Sequence record: NC_061444.1 | Strand: one strand, 5' to 3' | Length of the DNA: 64,000 nucleotides | Part shown: piece by piece, positions 2,225 to 19,678 of the stretch | Position numbering within the stretch: the first letter of the stretch is position 1 | Layout: the number at the start of each line of letters is the position of its first letter | Program-made: the position numbers and the translations under genes | The notes under the pieces: generated by a model | What the model was told of the DNA's origin: nothing | Database searches by the model: none | Seen by the model: the letters and a program-made list of their open reading frames with translations, nothing else

Positions 2225-4750
2225 ATGGCAAAAACGAACAACAAGGCTGAGAAAAAAGCTGAGAAGAAAGCTAAAGTCAAAGCCTCTAAGTCGAATGACA
2301 AAGCAGTCGCCTCTGATGATATCGGTGGCGTTGAAGTATTAGGCTTTGACCTCGGCAGCATGATGGATGACGTGCTCGACGGCATCGAAAAGAAAACGAA
2401 AGTAAGCTCTGCCGATGCAGCACGACACGCACCTCGTATCTCTACCGGTGTGCTTGCGCTTGATATGTACCTTGACGGTGGTATCGTACCTGGCGGTTGG
2501 TATACGTTCAGCGGCGGTGAGCAGTCGTGTAAGTCAACAATGACCATGAGTATCATGGCGAGTCTGATTCGTCTGAAATACTCTGGCATTAGCGTAGTGT
2601 TCGACTACGAAGGTTCGACCGATGCTGAATACGTTGCGGGTCAGCTCAAAACATTCGGTGTTAAAGTCGATCCGAAAACAATCTTCGGTGTGCGTGACGA
2701 AGACGGCTCGTGGATTATCAAGCCTAAGATTCGTTACTATGCACCTGACAACGGTGAGCGCTTCTTCGATTATATGTCGATGCTGCGTCGTCGTCTGCCT
2801 GACAAGATCGTAGAGAAAGACGGCTCTGCGTATTATCTCTTTGAGAACAACAAAGAGAACGCGAAGAAGCTGGCCGGTAAGTACGACAAGAAGTGGTTCA
2901 GTCGTAACAACCAGTTCAAAGTTCCTGCTGCTGATGGTCACATGCAAGCGGCGGTTATCGTTGACTCCTATCCAGCAATGCTGCCTGATCAGGTCGATGA
3001 CGATGACGGTTCAAAAGCAATGGCACTGCAAGCGCGTATGTTCTCTGACGGTATCAAACGTTTCCGTGGTGGTATGCGCCGTAAGATGATGACCATTGTG
3101 GGCGTTAACCAGTTGCGTCAGAAGCCTGCTGTAATGTTCGGTAGCCCTGAGTACGAACCGGGTGGTGATGCGCTCAAGTTCTACTGCTTCGACCGTGAGA
3201 CTCAGATTCGTACTGATCACGGTGTGCTGACTGCACCTCAGATCAAAGAGCTTCTGGACAACGGCACTGAGGTGCGCGTTGAGTCGTTCGACGGTTATCA
3301 GAAAATTCAGGCGGTGTGGCAGGTTGAAGACGCGCCATTCCCAATCGAAATGAATGCTGGTGGGCACACGTATATCGGTAGCGCCGAGCATCGTCAGTTC
3401 ACGTTTATGTATGACTGGACTGACGAAGGTATGATGGTCCTGCGTCCTGAGTGGAACACACTTGACCAGCTTGCTAAGTGGCCTGATAAGAAAGGTCAGT
3501 ATGCGGGTCTGCGTGTACCGCCAGTGAAAGAACTGAAACAGAACGTGCCTGACGCATTCGACGAAGCAAGCCAGCTCGTTCGTAATCTTCTGGGCAACTG
3601 CGATCCGGTAAGCGTTCAATTGCCGCTGGCTACTCACGGTGATGCGACCTATGCCGCTAACGTGCTGACCATTGATATGGTAGGCGAAAGCACCGACGTG
3701 TCTGACTTCTCGTTCTGGGCTAAGAAGCTGCTTGATATCGGTGTGTACGCATACGCTGATGAAAGCGGTCTGCACATGCCGGGCCTGAACAAATACGAGC
3801 TGGAGCAAGCTGTTGAGCAATACGCTGACGGTGAGTTTGTTGGTCTGTCGTTCGAAGCCACCAGCCGTCAACGTCAAACGCAGATGCTGTCTGTTATTGC
3901 TGACGTGTTCCCTGAACTGACTCGCTACGTTCTGGACTATCAGTTGCAGACTGGTCAGGATAAAATCTATCTGGCACCAGAGAATGACTTCGCTCAGGCT
4001 CTCGACCTGATTCTGCACAAACAGATTGCAGGCTATGATGACCTGTACGATCTGCTGATGACTCAGCTCGCTTACGTTGAAGACTGGTTCAACTTCGACA
4101 ACTCGATTGTGCCTGTGCCGTTCACGCTCAAAGCTCTCGACAAGCCTGTTGAGTTCTGGGACGTCAACGTTGAAGAAACCTCTGTGGTTATCACTAACGG
4201 TTTCGTATCGCATAACAGTGACGTGCGTGTTCGTCTGGCTTCTCGCGCAGTGCCAGAAGGTTGGCCGAAACTCAAAGACGCGCCTGGCGTTGTCGGAGAG
4301 AAGTCTGTTACTGTCGAAGGTGGTACTGACCGCTATCGCTTCATTGCTGCTAAGACCATCAAGAACAAGATGGGCGGCATTCCAAACCAGAGCACTTGGT
4401 TGCGTCTGTGGGAAGCTGACGGTAATGGTGAAGCGCGTGGCTTCGACCCAGTGTTCGATACGTGGCACTATCTGAAAGTTCTCGGTCTGATCAACGGTAC
4501 TCGTAAGAACTTCAAGATCAAGGCGCCGTGTCCTCTTGCGTCCGAAGTCAAGATGGACTGGGATGATTTCCGTACTCTTATCAACGGCAGCAAGGAACAA
4601 GTTGTCGCTGTCTGTAAGAAACTGAAAGTCAAACCTGCCGGTCTGCGTCTGTGGTGCTTCAAGTTCGTGCAGTCCGCGAAAGGCAAAGAAATGTTGAAAG
4701 CGTCTATCAGTAAGTCTGCGAAGTCTTCTGATGACGGTGACGACGATTAA
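2225..4750 (+). CDS. recA: RecA/UvsX-like recombinase containing an intein
   Basis: Walker A GGEQSCKST; VIVDSYPAM Walker B; NQLRQKPAVMFGSPEYEPGGDALKFY matches RecA NQIR...VMFGNPETTTGGNALKFY; IKNK. Confidence 0.92.
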   Translation: MAKTNNKAEKKAEKKAKVKASKSNDKAVASDDIGGVEVLGFDLGSMMDDVLDGIEKKTKVSSADAARHAPRISTGVLALDMYLDGGIVPGGWYTFSGGEQSCKSTMTMSIMASLIRLKYSGISVVFDYEGSTDAEYVAGQLKTFGVKVDPKTIFGVRDEDGSWIIKPKIRYYAPDNGERFFDYMSMLRRRLPDKIVEKDGSAYYLFENNKENAKKLAGKYDKKWFSRNNQFKVPAADGHMQAAVIVDSYPAMLPDQVDDDDGSKAMALQARMFSDGIKRFRGGMRRKMMTIVGVNQLRQKPAVMFGSPEYEPGGDALKFYCFDRETQIRTDHGVLTAPQIKELLDNGTEVRVESFDGYQKIQAVWQVEDAPFPIEMNAGGHTYIGSAEHRQFTFMYDWTDEGMMVLRPEWNTLDQLAKWPDKKGQYAGLRVPPVKELKQNVPDAFDEASQLVRNLLGNCDPVSVQLPLATHGDATYAANVLTIDMVGESTDVSDFSFWAKKLLDIGVYAYADESGLHMPGLNKYELEQAVEQYADGEFVGLSFEATSRQRQTQMLSVIADVFPELTRYVLDYQLQTGQDKIYLAPENDFAQALDLILHKQIAGYDDLYDLLMTQLAYVEDWFNFDNSIVPVPFTLKALDKPVEFWDVNVEETSVVITNGFVSHNSDVRVRLASRAVPEGWPKLKDAPGVVGEKSVTVEGGTDRYRFIAAKTIKNKMGGIPNQSTWLRLWEADGNGEARGFDPVFDTWHYLKVLGLINGTRKNFKIKAPCPLASEVKMDWDDFRTLINGSKEQVVAVCKKLKVKPAGLRLWCFKFVQSAKGKEMLKASISKSAKSSDDGDDD
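3185..4216 (+). mobile_element. intein (344 aa, residues 321-664) with degenerate homing-endonuclease-like insert
   Basis: Block A CFDRETQIRTDHG directly after ALKFY; block B SAEH; blocks F/G WDVNVEETSVVITNGFVSHN followed by +1 Ser; removal restores ALKFY-SDVRVRL. Confidence 0.9.
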
Positions 4751-4799: not shown

Positions 4800-5222
4800 A
4801 TGCGTACTCAAATCTTTACTGCCGATATCGTCAATCTGGAAAAGACGGAGACCGTCGAAGAAACTGGCGAAGAGATTGTTAGTCAGACAATCGTACCAAA
4901 CGTCGAAGGCGAACTGACCGTCAGTGTTGACGAGCTTGTGCGTCTGTCTGAGGGTTTAACTGAACCTACTGACTCTGACTGTCGCCTGATCGTTATCGCA
5001 TCGCCTGATGCCGTACCTCTATTCTACGGCGAAGCGCTGTCTGACTACTTCGATCCAATCGAACGTGTTGCAGATATCGAAGCTGGCAACATCGGCTCTA
5101 TCGTTGGTATGCAGGTTGTTCGTGGTCTGCAAGGCGAGCACCCATACGTTGCGGTCGTGGAAGTGCGCGACGCTGACACCGTAGAGATCGTTCGTTACAA
5201 CGCGTCTGTAGTAAAACTGTAA
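4800..5222 (+). CDS. hypothetical protein (acidic, 140 aa)
   Basis: AAGGAG SD; phage-like codon usage. Confidence 0.85.
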   Translation: MRTQIFTADIVNLEKTETVEETGEEIVSQTIVPNVEGELTVSVDELVRLSEGLTEPTDSDCRLIVIASPDAVPLFYGEALSDYFDPIERVADIEAGNIGSIVGMQVVRGLQGEHPYVAVVEVRDADTVEIVRYNASVVKL

Positions 5223-5260
5223 ATACCTAGTGGGAGCAAGTCTCCCACATTCTCTCGCTT

Positions 5261-5311
5261 GATAGGCAATGCGCCACAAGCAAAACAACCAACTCGATAG
5301 GCAATGCGCCA
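5261..5311 (+). repeat. 16-bp direct repeat GATAGGCAATGCGCCA x2 (5261-5276, 5296-5311)
   Basis: Exact duplication with 19-nt A/C-rich spacer, ending at the SD of the 5322 gene. Confidence 0.9.
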
Positions 5312-5321
5312 GGAGTGACTT

Positions 5322-6023
5322 ATGAAAAAGATTCAAACTAATATTCTGCCGACCGAAGCTCTGCATGGTTTAATTCACGGTTATGCACGTCAGGCCAAAC
5401 AGCCAGATGCTGCAAGCAAAACATTGTTCTACGTGGACGTCACTGAACGCAGCGCTAACGATGCGCTATATGCTATTCTGCGTCGTGATATCCCTGCAAA
5501 TATCGTCGGTACTGCCTACGATTGCATTTCGAATTTCCGAGGACATACAGCACCTGCTCAACTTCCTGTTGTGCTGTCCGAGAGCTTATATCACATAAGT
5601 CTTGATAGACTCTCCAGTTCTCTCGCAGGTATCTTCGACGCTCTGTGCCGCACCGTACATACGAACGACACGCAAATCACTATCTATGGTGAACCTGCGG
5701 TTGAGAAACTCCTGTCTATTGTTCGAGACACGCAATTCAAAGACTTCTTAGATGTGTGTACGCCACAACTTGCTTGTGGTGACTTCGACCTAAAGTCTAA
5801 TATCACTGTAGACAACTTCGTGTCTATGGCAATCGACCCTGAGTTTGAAAAGCGTGTTCAGGAGATGCCAGCGACCACTTATACTTTTGGTCGGGACTTC
5901 ATGTTCATGCACTATGAAGACCTGCACAAAGTCATTCAGATGCTGCGTCGATATAAAAAGAATTGTATGCTGCATCCGGATCTGATGCGCTACTACTTCA
6001 TGAACGTAATCTGTAAATATTGA
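5322..6023 (+). CDS. hypothetical protein (233 aa), probable distant paralog of 7187-7945
   Basis: AGGAG SD; shared C-terminal pattern with 7187 ORF. Confidence 0.8.
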   Translation: MKKIQTNILPTEALHGLIHGYARQAKQPDAASKTLFYVDVTERSANDALYAILRRDIPANIVGTAYDCISNFRGHTAPAQLPVVLSESLYHISLDRLSSSLAGIFDALCRTVHTNDTQITIYGEPAVEKLLSIVRDTQFKDFLDVCTPQLACGDFDLKSNITVDNFVSMAIDPEFEKRVQEMPATTYTFGRDFMFMHYEDLHKVIQMLRRYKKNCMLHPDLMRYYFMNVICKY

Positions 6024-6071
6024 TCACCAACCGAACACAAATGCTGTGTGTAGTCTAGCCCGATTTGGGCA

Positions 6072-6104
6072 GGGGAGAGCCGGATGGCCTCCCCATTTTT
6101 TTTT
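6072..6104 (+). terminator. intrinsic terminator immediately upstream of AcrVA2-like gene
   Basis: GGGGAG-A-GCC-GGAT-GGC-CTCCCC then T9. Confidence 0.8.
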
Positions 6105-6117
6105 GTCTGAGGGTTTT

Positions 6118-7140
6118 ATGTCTGAAAAAGAAACATTCGTCCAAGTACATGAGGCTTACCTGCAAGAGTCTGCCTCTCGCGGCGCAGCACGATCAAAAAT
6201 AACTGATCAATTCACTACGTACCTGAAAAAGAACAATGGCAAACTTCCTGCACTTGGAGTACCTATGGAAGAGTTTGTTCGTTGGGCTAATATGATTCCT
6301 ACGGAGATCAATCCTGACATAGCGCGTCAGTTAATGTTTATTTCGTCAGCGACCTATACGCATTATGTTTGGTCTTTTACGAAAGCATCGTTTGTGATTG
6401 AGAAAGAACTGTGGCCTCATCTGATTGAGGGCGATGCGCCTAAAGTTCTGCCCACTTCTACACTGCGCCAATTGCCTCATTGGTCACAGTGGATCAATTG
6501 CGTGTTCACACTCGACTACAAACATGCCGCGACTGGACACAAATACGAAATTGATATTGAAGGGTTCTGGGCAACATACGTCAACTACCAAGAGGCAACT
6601 CACCTGAGCCTGTCCTGCTTAGGTGTGTATAATGACGGCACAGGCAATCAAGTAATGTCGCTCTATATCATATTCGACATTACCAAAGACATGGAGCTGT
6701 CCGACGGTTTCGATTGGTTCATGCACCTAGTTGGCGGTAGAGGCGCAACTGGTGTGGACATTAATTCCGACAATGGTAGTGAGGTCAATGAGGCCGTTAT
6801 GGCTCTCATGAAGCCTGTCGTTAACGTGTTGCTATTTGTCGCATCGCAAGTAGACAACATCTATAAAGGAGGGATCAAGTCACTCAAACCTAGACGTAGC
6901 GGTAACAGCTACAAAATCATTCCTGTTCGTGATGTTCGTGAGTGGAATGTTGGTACAGAGCTACTGAATGAAATTCGTACCTACGAAAACGAAGTGAAGT
7001 CTCACGAATCAAATGGTCGCCGTGCTCACATACGACGAGCGCACCATCATAGCTACTGGTATGGCCCTCTCAAGGGTGAGCGTGAATTGAAATCGCGCTG
7101 GGTACCACCATGTGTTGTTCGCGGCACTGTCGTAGAATAA
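6118..7140 (+). CDS. AcrVA2/FinQ family protein
   Basis: Collinear motifs recalled from AcrVA2: W..T.., PTS.L..LP.W, I.GFWA.Y, (L/V)LL(W/F), (I/V)G..L..E(V/I)R.Y and C-terminal HIRR(G/A)H.H.YW.G...RW.P..V; ATG 6118 has GAGG SD. Confidence 0.75.
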   Translation: MSEKETFVQVHEAYLQESASRGAARSKITDQFTTYLKKNNGKLPALGVPMEEFVRWANMIPTEINPDIARQLMFISSATYTHYVWSFTKASFVIEKELWPHLIEGDAPKVLPTSTLRQLPHWSQWINCVFTLDYKHAATGHKYEIDIEGFWATYVNYQEATHLSLSCLGVYNDGTGNQVMSLYIIFDITKDMELSDGFDWFMHLVGGRGATGVDINSDNGSEVNEAVMALMKPVVNVLLFVASQVDNIYKGGIKSLKPRRSGNSYKIIPVRDVREWNVGTELLNEIRTYENEVKSHESNGRRAHIRRAHHHSYWYGPLKGERELKSRWVPPCVVRGTVVE

Positions 7141-7186
7141 CTCTCTTAATCAACTCCACGTATGGGCGTTATGCCCGGAGGTTAAT

Positions 7187-7945
7187 ATGTCTCGTGTACA
7201 AACTCTATGGATTCCTGATATGGAATCGTATGAGCCTTACGTTCGTTCTCTGTGCCACATGGCTCGCGCTCTGGAGAACAATGGCCTGAACTACGGTAAA
7301 ATGAAGCGTGTTGTGTTCATCGGTCTGTCAAAGCGTAGCGTCGAATCCTACGTCAAACAGCTTCTCAATTCAAACACGTTGCCTAATACGCTCGTCTGTT
7401 TTGGTATTGACGAAGCACCCAACAGCCACAAAGAATTTTCATTCATCGGCTCTCATGTTGTGTTGATGCACGACCTGATGTATGCCGGTGATAATGCAAT
7501 GGTCCGTGTGTCGCAACGTGTTCTCGAAATCATTCTGAGTCTCAAGCAGCGACCAGAAGATCGCGAACTTAAAAACGGTTCGCTGTCGCTTGTATATCAG
7601 AGTCCGATGCTGTGGTCTTATATTCGAGACAACGGCGCCAGCATGTACAATCACAACCCGCGCATCCAATATCAAGAAGGCCTGATATCATCCATCGGTG
7701 TTGAGCAGCTCATGTCCTGTCAAAACAATGAGGACTACCACAAGCTACATGCACCTGTGATTACGATCGGCCTTGAGTTCTTCCACGTCAAGCCTGATGA
7801 ACTTCTGTCTAAGCTCTGCAATCTGATGTGGTCGCTCGGTACAACCACCAGCGAAGTTAAGGACACGTACAAGATCGTATTGCATGATGACTTCCGACTC
7901 GCCTTCTTCGAGGAATTTCTGCTACGCGACTTTAAGGGCTTTTAA
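7187..7945 (+). CDS. hypothetical protein (252 aa), probable distant paralog of 5322-6023
   Basis: GGAGG SD; long ORF. Confidence 0.85.
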   Translation: MSRVQTLWIPDMESYEPYVRSLCHMARALENNGLNYGKMKRVVFIGLSKRSVESYVKQLLNSNTLPNTLVCFGIDEAPNSHKEFSFIGSHVVLMHDLMYAGDNAMVRVSQRVLEIILSLKQRPEDRELKNGSLSLVYQSPMLWSYIRDNGASMYNHNPRIQYQEGLISSIGVEQLMSCQNNEDYHKLHAPVITIGLEFFHVKPDELLSKLCNLMWSLGTTTSEVKDTYKIVLHDDFRLAFFEEFLLRDFKGF

Positions 7946-8018
7946 GAATATTCTTAGTCCGCTATCTAATTTCTATATGTTGGCAAGTAGTGCTGACGTA
8001 TCGTTATTGGAGAATAAC

Positions 8019-8279
8019 ATGTGCGGACGTAGCCTATTACGGTTGAAGTACAACGCACGGTCCTCGAACTGGTGCAATAATAAAGTAAACGCTTGTAGCG
8101 AGCGGAAGGCGATAAACGTCCAGTGCGAACAATTCTTGGAAGCAACCAAAGATTGTCGTTCTGTGCAGAAGTCGTCAAGTGTAGTTTCTTTCTTCAAAGG
8201 TCAAGAGCTGGTTGGTCAAGCTATTTGGCATGAGATAGAGGGCGACAACACGCTTCAATTCCGGTTGCTACTTGCCTAA
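8019..8279 (+). CDS. hypothetical protein (86 aa)
   Basis: GGAG SD before ATG 8019; fills gap before terminator. Confidence 0.5.
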   Translation: MCGRSLLRLKYNARSSNWCNNKVNACSERKAINVQCEQFLEATKDCRSVQKSSSVVSFFKGQELVGQAIWHEIEGDNTLQFRLLLA

Positions 8280-8283
8280 CGAT

Positions 8284-8318
8284 AAAAGGGCTTTCAGAGA
8301 TGATCTGATGGCCCTTTT
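8284..8318. terminator. hairpin terminator, potentially bidirectional
   Basis: AAAAGGGC..TCAGA-GATGA-TCTGA..GCCCTTTT. Confidence 0.7.
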
Positions 8319-8376
8319 CTTATTCTAACACTAATTTTCACCTGTCATTACACACAACCGAACTCGGAGTACTCAC

Positions 8377-10017
8377 ATGTCTTTGATTAAAATTCAAGGC
8401 GTTGCATCCACATCTGCTCCTTCGAAAGCGCAGAAAGATGCCGCCGTATATATGTTTGGTTCTAAGGGCCATTCAATCGTCGCAGTGCTCGACAAATTCA
8501 GTCGCGCCAAAGAACTGCGTACTGCTCACCTTGACGGTTTACTCAAGCTGATGAAGGACGGTGAAGATGACGATATCATCAAGTTCACCGCGTCTGCACT
8601 CGGTAAGAGAACTATTACTGCTGCTCGGGCATTTGCTGTAGCTAAGACCCTGACTTCCAGCATCAAAGCGTTGAAACTGATTCGTGTTCCTGTTAAGTGG
8701 GTAGAAGGTCACTCAGATCTTGCCGCTGCTCGCGCACAGGAAACAAAAGAGATTCGCGCACGTCGTACTGCGGGCAACAAACCTGAGAAGCCTATTAAGC
8801 TCGACAACCCAGGCGCACCTGAGTCTACCACAGTAGACAACAAAGTGATTGACGCGAAGAAAGGTTCTGCGACACCTGCAACCGATGACCTAAGTGTGAT
8901 TGACCGTGTAGTTAAAAACCCTTCTATCAAAAACACGTCTATCATTATTCGCCGCGTCTTTAAAGGCCATGAGACTACATCGTCACTGATGTTCCGCAAA
9001 GGCGTAGGTACTCAATCGACGCTTCTGGGTCTTGGGTCTCACGGTAACGGACACGAGACTGGTGCCGGACTGCTGATGGCTGCATTCAAAGCTACCGGTA
9101 TCAAACCTAAGTGGTACTTAGCTGATGCTGGCGATGCTGCTTTCGATTTGGGTTCTGCCGCGAACGTAACTAAAGTGTTCAAATGGCTGTCTGCAAGAAA
9201 GCCGGGCGAAACTTTTGCTGCTACTGCGAAGCTACCTAAGTCTGGTAAAGTGCCTGAAGGTGCAACGCGTGTTGTGCGTGATCACATCGGCAAGCCTGAG
9301 CGTGTTTCGAAAGAAAAACTCGCTTCTTCGACGTTTGATTTTGTCGGCGTTAAGTCTGCTGCCGGTGGCGCACTTAAACTGCAATTCAAACAACCGAAGA
9401 ATGACCACGAATGGTCACTGACAATCCGTCGCAATAAAGACTCTATTACGAGTGACCACGATGGTTCTTCTGGCTACCAGACTGCTGAGTCGTTCTTGCA
9501 GCGCGGTGTCGTTGCAGTAGGCGGCAGTGTTGTTAATGAGCACCAGCAGCCGAACAGCGCGATCTTCCAGTTTGCGAATGAAGATCAGGCCAAAGCATTT
9601 ATGTCTTGGGTTAAAAAGCAAAAAGCCCAGACAATCAACTTCAAAACTGAGCCTAAGATCACGGTCACCAAAGCTGCTTCATACACACCGTCAGGTAAAA
9701 CTGATGTTTCGCTGGTGGATGAAATGGCAGAAGTACCTGCACGCAAGATCGCTGCGAAACCACTTCAGGCGCGTGAAGAATATTTCAACGCTCTGCGCAA
9801 CATCCTGCAAAGCAATCTGCCTAAGTCAGACGTGTCAGCAACATCTGACGGTGTTGTCGTAGCGAAAGGTACCAAGATGTACACGATTCGCCTCGACGAC
9901 AAAGCGTGGACAATTCAGACAGGCGCTACTGGCAAACAGAAGAAGATTGGTGCGACGTTCGATATCGTTGACCTGCTCGGTATGATCGACAAGTCGATTC
10001 TGCGCCCCAAAGCGTAA
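8377..10017 (+). CDS. hypothetical Lys/Ala-rich protein (546 aa)
   Basis: GGAG SD; long ORF bounded by terminators on both sides. Confidence 0.9.
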   Translation: MSLIKIQGVASTSAPSKAQKDAAVYMFGSKGHSIVAVLDKFSRAKELRTAHLDGLLKLMKDGEDDDIIKFTASALGKRTITAARAFAVAKTLTSSIKALKLIRVPVKWVEGHSDLAAARAQETKEIRARRTAGNKPEKPIKLDNPGAPESTTVDNKVIDAKKGSATPATDDLSVIDRVVKNPSIKNTSIIIRRVFKGHETTSSLMFRKGVGTQSTLLGLGSHGNGHETGAGLLMAAFKATGIKPKWYLADAGDAAFDLGSAANVTKVFKWLSARKPGETFAATAKLPKSGKVPEGATRVVRDHIGKPERVSKEKLASSTFDFVGVKSAAGGALKLQFKQPKNDHEWSLTIRRNKDSITSDHDGSSGYQTAESFLQRGVVAVGGSVVNEHQQPNSAIFQFANEDQAKAFMSWVKKQKAQTINFKTEPKITVTKAASYTPSGKTDVSLVDEMAEVPARKIAAKPLQAREEYFNALRNILQSNLPKSDVSATSDGVVVAKGTKMYTIRLDDKAWTIQTGATGKQKKIGATFDIVDLLGMIDKSILRPKA

Positions 10018-19135: not shown

Positions 19136-19678
19136 ATGGCAAAGTCACTAGGCGTATACATGACGTATATTCTGCGTCATAAGCCTCAGGACATTGGCAT
19201 CGCAATGGACACCCAAGGCTGGGTGTCTGTTCTGGATTTCTTGCAGAAAGCGAAGTACAAAAAGCAAGTGACCAGAGAGATGCTGATCGCAGAAGTAGAA
19301 GCGGACGATAAAGGTCGTTTTGAGTTTAACTCGAACAAGTCCAAGATTCGTTGTGTTCAAGGTCATTCTGTCGAACACGTCATTCTCAATCTTGCCCCGT
19401 GGACTGATTGTTTGCCTTTGTATCACGGCACCGCTGAAAAGAATATTGCTTCAATCAAGCACGAAGGAATCCTGAAACGCAAACGCAAGCATGTCCATAT
19501 CAGTAACGATATCGAAACAGCAAAGCGTGTTGGTCAACGTCACGGTGTCCCTGTTGTGTTTGAGATCGACACACAGACAATGATTACTCACGGGTACAAG
19601 TTCTACAGAGCAGAGAATGGAGTCATCTTAACTGACCACGTACCTTCTCGCTATATCAGGCTTATGGACGCTAACTAA
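19136..19678 (+). CDS. kptA: RNA 2'-phosphotransferase (Tpt1/KptA)
   Basis: YILRHKP, GWV, DDKGRF, IRCVQGHS, LYHGT, RKHVHIS, ENGV. Confidence 0.95.
   Translation: MAKSLGVYMTYILRHKPQDIGIAMDTQGWVSVLDFLQKAKYKKQVTREMLIAEVEADDKGRFEFNSNKSKIRCVQGHSVEHVILNLAPWTDCLPLYHGTAEKNIASIKHEGILKRKRKHVHISNDIETAKRVGQRHGVPVVFEIDTQTMITHGYKFYRAENGVILTDHVPSRYIRLMDAN

Follow-up and report, generated by a model that had tools for sequence, protein, structure and literature searches.

The gp252 open reading frame and its flanking DNA

The DNA analysed here (the window, 64,000 nucleotides) is the final 64 kb of the genome of Erwinia phage pEa_SNUABM_32 (NC_061444.1), a phage of Erwinia amylovora that belongs to the genus Alexandravirus. 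With a genome of 265,891 bp it is rightly termed a jumbo phage, as a preliminary description of this DNA had done. Over the 3.5 kb around gp252 the DNA is 100% identical to the phage record. Within the 64-kb window the genes all have + orientation, and tRNA genes are absent.

The gp252 open reading frame occupies positions 6118–7140 of the + strand. It is uninterrupted from an ATG at 6118 to the stop codon at 7138–7140 and encodes 340 aa plus the stop. These coordinates are the same as those of the annotated CDS YP_010301029.1, which is listed as "hypothetical protein" with nothing more. The C-terminal motifs quoted in the preliminary description, which finish with RWVPPCVV, are present in the translation. 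There is a single gp252-type copy in the 64-kb window, and a search for a paralog within the window found none.

The ATG at 6118 is taken to be the real start since a Shine-Dalgarno-like sequence, GAGGG, is situated upstream of it at 6109–6113, and since the N-terminus common to the homologs begins at the position equivalent to 6118. A longer reading frame from the GTG at 6046 was considered and rejected, as it would cross a terminator-like hairpin and would add sequence upstream of the N-terminus found in the homologs. Annotated starts of the homologs are inconsistent, e.g. that of Alexandra is placed inside the conserved upstream block described below and that of AD1 well downstream of the 6118 equivalent.

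An intergenic block of approximately 115 nt (positions 5994–6108, + strand) precedes gp252 and is conserved. It shows 88–94% nt sequence identity in phages SNUABM_3 and Alexandra, in which the coding DNA on its flanks is unalignable. The block contains a 23-nt motif (6034–6056), a small hairpin (6058–6070), and a G+C-rich, bulged hairpin (6072–6094) followed by nine T residues (6096–6104). In Y3 and SNUABM_21 the stem of the latter hairpin is altered on both sides. The block is treated here as a terminator-like element and also as the left boundary of the cassette defined below. It was considered as an RNA element as well, but this was dropped because its folding energy is not significantly different from that of shuffled sequence (z = −1.14) and it displays little covariation; an Rfam search at positions 5800–7400 gives no match. 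The 23-nt motif occurs only once in the window and was thus rejected as a general promoter consensus, and a sigma-70 promoter scan gives nothing above chance, the rules of the scan also missing the bulged hairpin at 6072–6094. A search with an 8-base consensus of phage T4 late promoters gives no match. The block may serve in regulation, as an anchor for recombination, or in both capacities.

At the 3′ side of gp252, the downstream neighbor in most relatives is gp253 (7187–7945, + strand), which has no family match. No terminator was found in the 46-nt spacer that separates the two genes, thus gp253 may be co-transcribed with gp252.

Relationship of gp252 to AcrVA2 and FinQ

The gp252 amino acid sequence is related to AcrVA2, a protein from a Moraxella bovoculi prophage with known structure (PDB 7CI1/7CI2). 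A phmmer search of the PDB with gp252 alone gives AcrVA2 (7ci1_A) with an E-value = 1.8e-8, where positions 72–335 of gp252 align with positions 67–317 of the chain. A family profile built from 26 sequences improves this to an E-value = 3.1e-36 for 7CI1. The AlphaFold2 model of gp252 (pLDDT = 87.4, pTM = 0.85) yields AcrVA2 in a Foldseek search of the PDB as well (7ci2_A, E-value = 7e-12, TM = 0.54/0.58), and no other significant match to the model was found in the PDB, the next best having an E-value of 0.03. Sequence identity in the Foldseek alignment is 16%. Residues 1–71 of gp252 match AcrVA2 by fold only and have no sequence alignment with it. Thus the collinear motifs that the preliminary description had reported through the whole protein are found by sequence at residues 72–335, but for the first 71 residues the correspondence is one of fold.

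A relationship to the plasmid protein FinQ is found also. In a tblastn search of 72,556 plasmids, gp252 has three weak matches and no more, and a gene named finQ by PGAP is matched with an E-value = 8e-4. Alignment of the family profile with the product of the PGAP-named finQ gene by hhalign gives a probability of 99.9% (E-value = 2.9e-37, 260 columns). The membership of gp252 in the AcrVA2/FinQ family is therefore secure by sequence, profile and fold. The preliminary description had made the same assignment and had proposed an HMM search as a check, and both the AcrVA2 and the finQ product profile matches uphold it.

In PHROGs, gp252 belongs to phrog_6160 (E-value = 3.9e-72), a cluster whose function is not annotated. 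Homologs of gp252 with 96%, 56%, 52% and 45% identity carry precomputed matches to PF26125 ("AcrVA2-like"). A Pfam scan of gp252 and its homologs gave no match, and since the scan was empty even for homologs with precomputed PF26125 matches, the copy of Pfam used appears to be without this model. There are no matches of gp252 in NCBIfam or PADLOC. The extent of the family depends on the search employed. A word-indexed protein search gave 4–6 relatives of gp252, and it is the full HMMER scan of 1.8 billion representative sequences that reveals the family, with 2,101 relatives at an E-value of 1e-3 or better and 407 at 1e-10 or better. A scan of one genome per bacterial species gives a mis-binned phage contig as the sole match.

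Conserved residues and variable segments

Marino et al. (bioRxiv 10.1101/2022.11.29.518452) report that AcrVA2 mutations W79A and D89A weaken activity and that H286A, R288A and H291A abolish mRNA down-regulation with Cas12a binding left intact. In the phmmer alignment, where the numbering of the PDB chain is native +1, the AcrVA2 residues W79, D89, H286, R288 and H291 correspond to W85, E95, H304, R306 and H309 of gp252. Every AcrVA2 residue reported as necessary for activity has a counterpart in gp252. W85 is found in all 11 phage alleles and in 24 of 26 diverse relatives; position 95 is acidic in 11 of 11 alleles (nine E, two D) and in 20 of the 26 relatives; H304, R306 and H309 are present in every one of the 11 alleles and 26 relatives. 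Residues invariant across the 26 diverse relatives are G279, H304, R306, H309, G316 and W328. The situation differs for the three AcrVA2 residues that contact the Cas12a peptide. A moderately confident counterpart of acidic character, D106, exists for E98 alone, and those of D129 and D195 are located in a poorly aligned, variable region of gp252 where the alignment is of low confidence.

Differences between phage alleles are clustered in aa positions 1–80 and 123–240, and the best conserved segments are at 81–120 and 241–340. The N-terminal segment, aa 1–80 (nt 6118–6357, + strand), is helical in the model, has no sequence alignment with AcrVA2, and varies between alleles with an identity share of 0.26–0.42. 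It is followed by a conserved block, aa 81–122 (6358–6483, + strand), which carries W85 (AcrVA2 W79), E95 (D89), D106 (E98), P112, P120 and W122. Positions 123–235 (6484–6822, + strand) are again variable (identity share 0.22–0.40) and form a beta-sheet, with strands at 123–213 in the model, and the start of a long helix. This segment may represent a specificity module. The C-terminal module, aa 236–340 (6823–7137, + strand; identity share 0.45–0.67), is proposed as an effector core. It includes the His/Arg motif H304-x-R306-x-x-H309-x-H311 (7027–7050, + strand), which aligns with H286/R288/H291 of AcrVA2.

A fixed slot with different alleles

The AcrVA2-like gene is found in one fixed slot, 3′ of the UvsX-like gene, in 10 related phages. 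The gene order SSB, UvsX-like recombinase, gp250, gp251, AcrVA2-like gene, gp253 is kept across these phages, which represent four named genera plus one unassigned phage; gp250, gp251 or gp253 is absent from two of the 10. By tblastn, 66 phage records contain one AcrVA2-like copy each, and the records listed are all 235–307 kb in size. These listed records are of Erwinia, Dickeya and Klebsiella/Serratia phages.

Identities at the slot do not follow those of the neighboring recombinase. Within the genus, SNUABM_1, AD1, Alexandra, SNUABM_22 and SNUABM_3 share 87–96% identity with SNUABM_32 in UvsX vs only 29–32% in the AcrVA2-like protein. In SNUABM_17, also of this genus, both proteins are 95% identical to those of SNUABM_32. 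Phages of other genera have a UvsX with 60–79% identity to that of SNUABM_32, and their AcrVA2-like proteins are 56% (Y3), 45% (SNUABM_21) and 42% (Yoloswag) identical to gp252. Thus gp252 is nearer to the alleles of more distant genera (42–56%) than to most of those in its own genus (approximately 30%).

An all-against-all identity matrix shows three allele classes in Alexandravirus with at most 35% mutual identity. Class A consists of the alleles of SNUABM_32 and SNUABM_17, class B of those of SNUABM_22, Alexandra, AD1 and SNUABM_1 (67–90% identical among themselves), and class C of the SNUABM_3 allele. The class B alleles of the Dickeya phage AD1 and the Erwinia phage SNUABM_1 are 90% identical. 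The predicted structures of homologs resemble that of gp252 with TM values from 0.88 (Yoloswag) down to 0.63 (RisingSun).

The segment that differs between allele classes is a cassette at positions 6110–7098. DNA similarity to the genus-mates ends at 6102–6109 and is found again from 7099 (class B) or 7018 (class C). As the similarity breaks very near the edges of the open reading frame, the exchanged unit is essentially the open reading frame itself. The open reading frame is uninterrupted in 11 of 11 phage alleles. Inside an allele class dN/dS is 0.045–0.10, which shows each allele to be a constrained, working protein under purifying selection. Between classes dS is saturated; the allele classes are old and do not constitute evidence of rapid positive selection.

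In huge phages, AcrVA2-like proteins had been reported in 2019 (Al-Shayeb et al.), non-Cas12a targets for such proteins have been proposed already, and the Pfam "AcrVA2-like" family covers close homologs of gp252. That a further jumbo phage has a member of the family is by itself expected. What is new here is the polymorphic cassette, i.e. closely related phages that carry very different alleles in one slot.

The genes around gp252 are variable as well. gp250, gp251, gp253 and gp255 are mosaic between related phages, with 27–90% identity, and their alleles assort independently of gp252. The stretch that follows UvsX (4800–10017) behaves as a hypervariable accessory region. Since the neighbors are also mosaic, the swapping of gp252 alleles may reflect a generally recombinogenic region and not selection on the gene. 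Pfam and PHROG scans of gp250, gp251, gp253, gp254 and gp255 give no match. No known anti-CRISPR, Aca regulator or defence-related family was found beside gp252; the arrangement that characterizes an acr-aca locus, an adjacent known Acr or helix-turn-helix Aca gene, is not seen there.

Comparison with known systems

AcrVA2 brings about a translation-dependent loss of a specific mRNA in which 5′ reads are retained and 3′ reads are lost (Marino et al., bioRxiv 10.1101/2022.11.29.518452). The same authors count approximately 1,800 orthologs, with plasmids and megaphages among the carriers, usually in bacteria without Cas12a, and they have proposed that orthologs have targets other than Cas12a. 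gp252 and AcrVA2 are similar in length (340 aa and a 323-residue chain) and in fold (TM 0.54–0.58), both are found on mobile elements, and the Trp, acidic and H-x-R-x-x-H positions are conserved between them. They differ in setting, as AcrVA2 is encoded in a prophage anti-CRISPR locus adjoining acrVA1 whereas gp252 adjoins replication genes in a jumbo phage that is lytic. The host of the latter is reported with type I-E and no Cas12a is described for it, the identity of the two proteins in the Foldseek alignment is 16%, and the N-terminal 71 residues of gp252 are unaligned.

FinQ, a fertility inhibition protein of IncI/IncF plasmids, lowers the mRNA of the F tra operon, which the older literature attributes to transcription termination. 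It has the C-terminal His/Arg motif in common with gp252 but is plasmid-borne; gp252 is phage-borne and does not have the conjugative-plasmid location. The group to which gp252 is closest is the jumbo-phage AcrVA2-like clade (PHROG 6160; Pfam PF26125), of which it is a member as a class A allele.

To our knowledge, AcrVA2 is so far the sole protein of a bacterial system shown to silence a gene via the nascent polypeptide. The nearest case that the AcrVA2 authors cite is mammalian tubulin autoregulation, where recognition of a nascent peptide leads to loss of the mRNA that encodes it. The resemblance to gp252 would be in the manner of working only; the tubulin pathway is eukaryotic and there is no homology.

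Proposed function of gp252 and alternatives

By analogy with AcrVA2, gp252 probably binds a short segment in one particular protein during its emergence from the ribosome, and this binding would lead to loss of the mRNA for that protein. Silencing would be the task of the conserved segments aa 81–122 and 236–340, which include the H-x-R-x-x-H-x-H motif, and the variable segments aa 1–80 and 123–235 would choose the target. The target is probably not Cas12a; a "conflict" gene that is non-essential and belongs to the host or to a competing mobile element is more likely. The silencing mechanism, the division into effector and specificity parts, and the kind of target are all inferred. With this understood, we consider it somewhat probable that gp252 is a family member which silences, in the manner of AcrVA2, a non-Cas12a "conflict" gene via the nascent peptide. 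A "conflict" target would explain why related phages keep the slot yet swap deeply different alleles.

The E. amylovora literature describes a cas cluster of type I-E and, in addition, a remnant array of type I-F, with Cas12a unmentioned (PMC9004355), which makes Cas12a an unlikely target. The preliminary description had argued that Cas12a is uncommon in Enterobacterales and that the homolog may have a new anti-defence specificity; the premise is reasonable given the type I-E system of the host, but the idea itself had been put forward before by the AcrVA2 authors. In our estimation it is very improbable that gp252 is a genuine anti-CRISPR against Cas12a and shares the target of AcrVA2. Its homology to AcrVA2, the retention of the residues needed for activity, and the acidic D106 at the position of E98, a Cas12a-peptide contact, are what one would expect of such a protein. 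Yet besides the CRISPR types of the host, the Foldseek identity to AcrVA2 is low, the D129 and D195 counterparts lie in the poorly aligned variable region, most members of the family are found in bacteria that lack Cas12a, and a single conserved target is at odds with the three very different alleles of one genus.

The three allele classes also bear on the proposal that gp252 serves host takeover or self-regulation of the phage, by the timed silencing of one conserved housekeeping gene or of a phage gene. All related phages examined have the gene, in a constant position beside replication and recombination genes, which agrees with this, as do the strongly purifying selection within classes and the occurrence of nearly the same allele in phages of two host genera. 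However, a conserved target should conserve the parts that recognize it, and here core proteins are approximately 90% identical while alleles are at most 35% identical, with the differences concentrated outside the effector core. A role of this kind is therefore judged unlikely. Allele swapping at a fixed slot favors a variable "conflict" target over a housekeeping one, an argument that is weakened by the mosaic neighbors. These same neighbors, likewise mosaic and without known families, could suggest that gp252 is a decaying or functionless passenger in a recombinogenic region, but the intact open reading frame in all 11 alleles, the low dN/dS within classes and the invariant key residues make this the least credible of the readings considered.

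A further reading, also unlikely but slightly less so than takeover or self-regulation, keeps the fold and changes the biochemistry, e.g. to transcription termination as was proposed for FinQ, or to direct binding of nucleic acid. A review has FinQ terminating tra transcription at multiple sites, the step that removes the mRNA is not known even for AcrVA2, and premature termination would give the same pattern of retained 5′ and lost 3′ reads that AcrVA2 shows. Against this, the dependence of AcrVA2 on the amino acid and not the codon sequence is well documented, and the residues required for its peptide-dependent activity are invariant in the gp252 alleles.

Returning to silencing of a "conflict" gene via the nascent peptide, the strongly diverged alleles, three or more in number, found in one slot of the nearly identical Erwinia and Dickeya jumbo phages might each recognize a different nascent polypeptide, a suggestion we make tentatively and regard as doubtful at present. 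Candidate targets under such per-allele specificity would be, e.g., various defence proteins of the host or genes that belong to rival elements. If this is the case, the alleles would amount to a naturally occurring set of interchangeable specificity modules built upon a single conserved core for silencing, and a comparison of the series could show how the AcrVA2/FinQ family reads its targets. The phages form a compact comparison set, with a common genome backbone, hosts that are mostly of one species, one slot and at least three allele classes. All known activity residues are common to the classes and the parts proposed to choose the target differ. The question of which targets are silenced by approximately 2,000 relatives in Cas12a-free organisms can thus be approached with descriptive data from existing isolates.

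Other observations

The UvsX-like recombinase gene (2225–4750) encodes 841 aa, with the RecA domain split by an insert of approximately 344 aa (about 3185–4216). The insert has intein-like ends, with Cys as the first residue, His-Asn as the last two, and Ser next in the sequence. It was considered as an intein, but Pfam shows neither an intein nor a homing-endonuclease domain in it. The UvsX gene of SNUABM_17 shows a further insertion of approximately 1,050 bp.

A gp252 homolog with 52% identity is found on a 9.2-kb contig, JAVWLC010000071.1, binned in a MAG named "Raoultibacter sp." The gene order of the contig is a RecA-like gene, two small genes and the AcrVA2-like gene, and the contig is almost certainly a mis-binned fragment of a related jumbo phage. 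In RisingSun, a 235-kb Erwinia phage, the homolog (MF459646.1, positions 128245–129135) is annotated as "putative mycothiosynthase". This name looks wrong, as the protein is AcrVA2-like by sequence as well as by fold, with the TM value given above.

pEa_SNUABM_32 also encodes an RNA 2′-phosphotransferase, gp275 (19136–19678), and an RNA ligase, gp245, situated just before the window. Together these two genes form a possible RNA-repair set.
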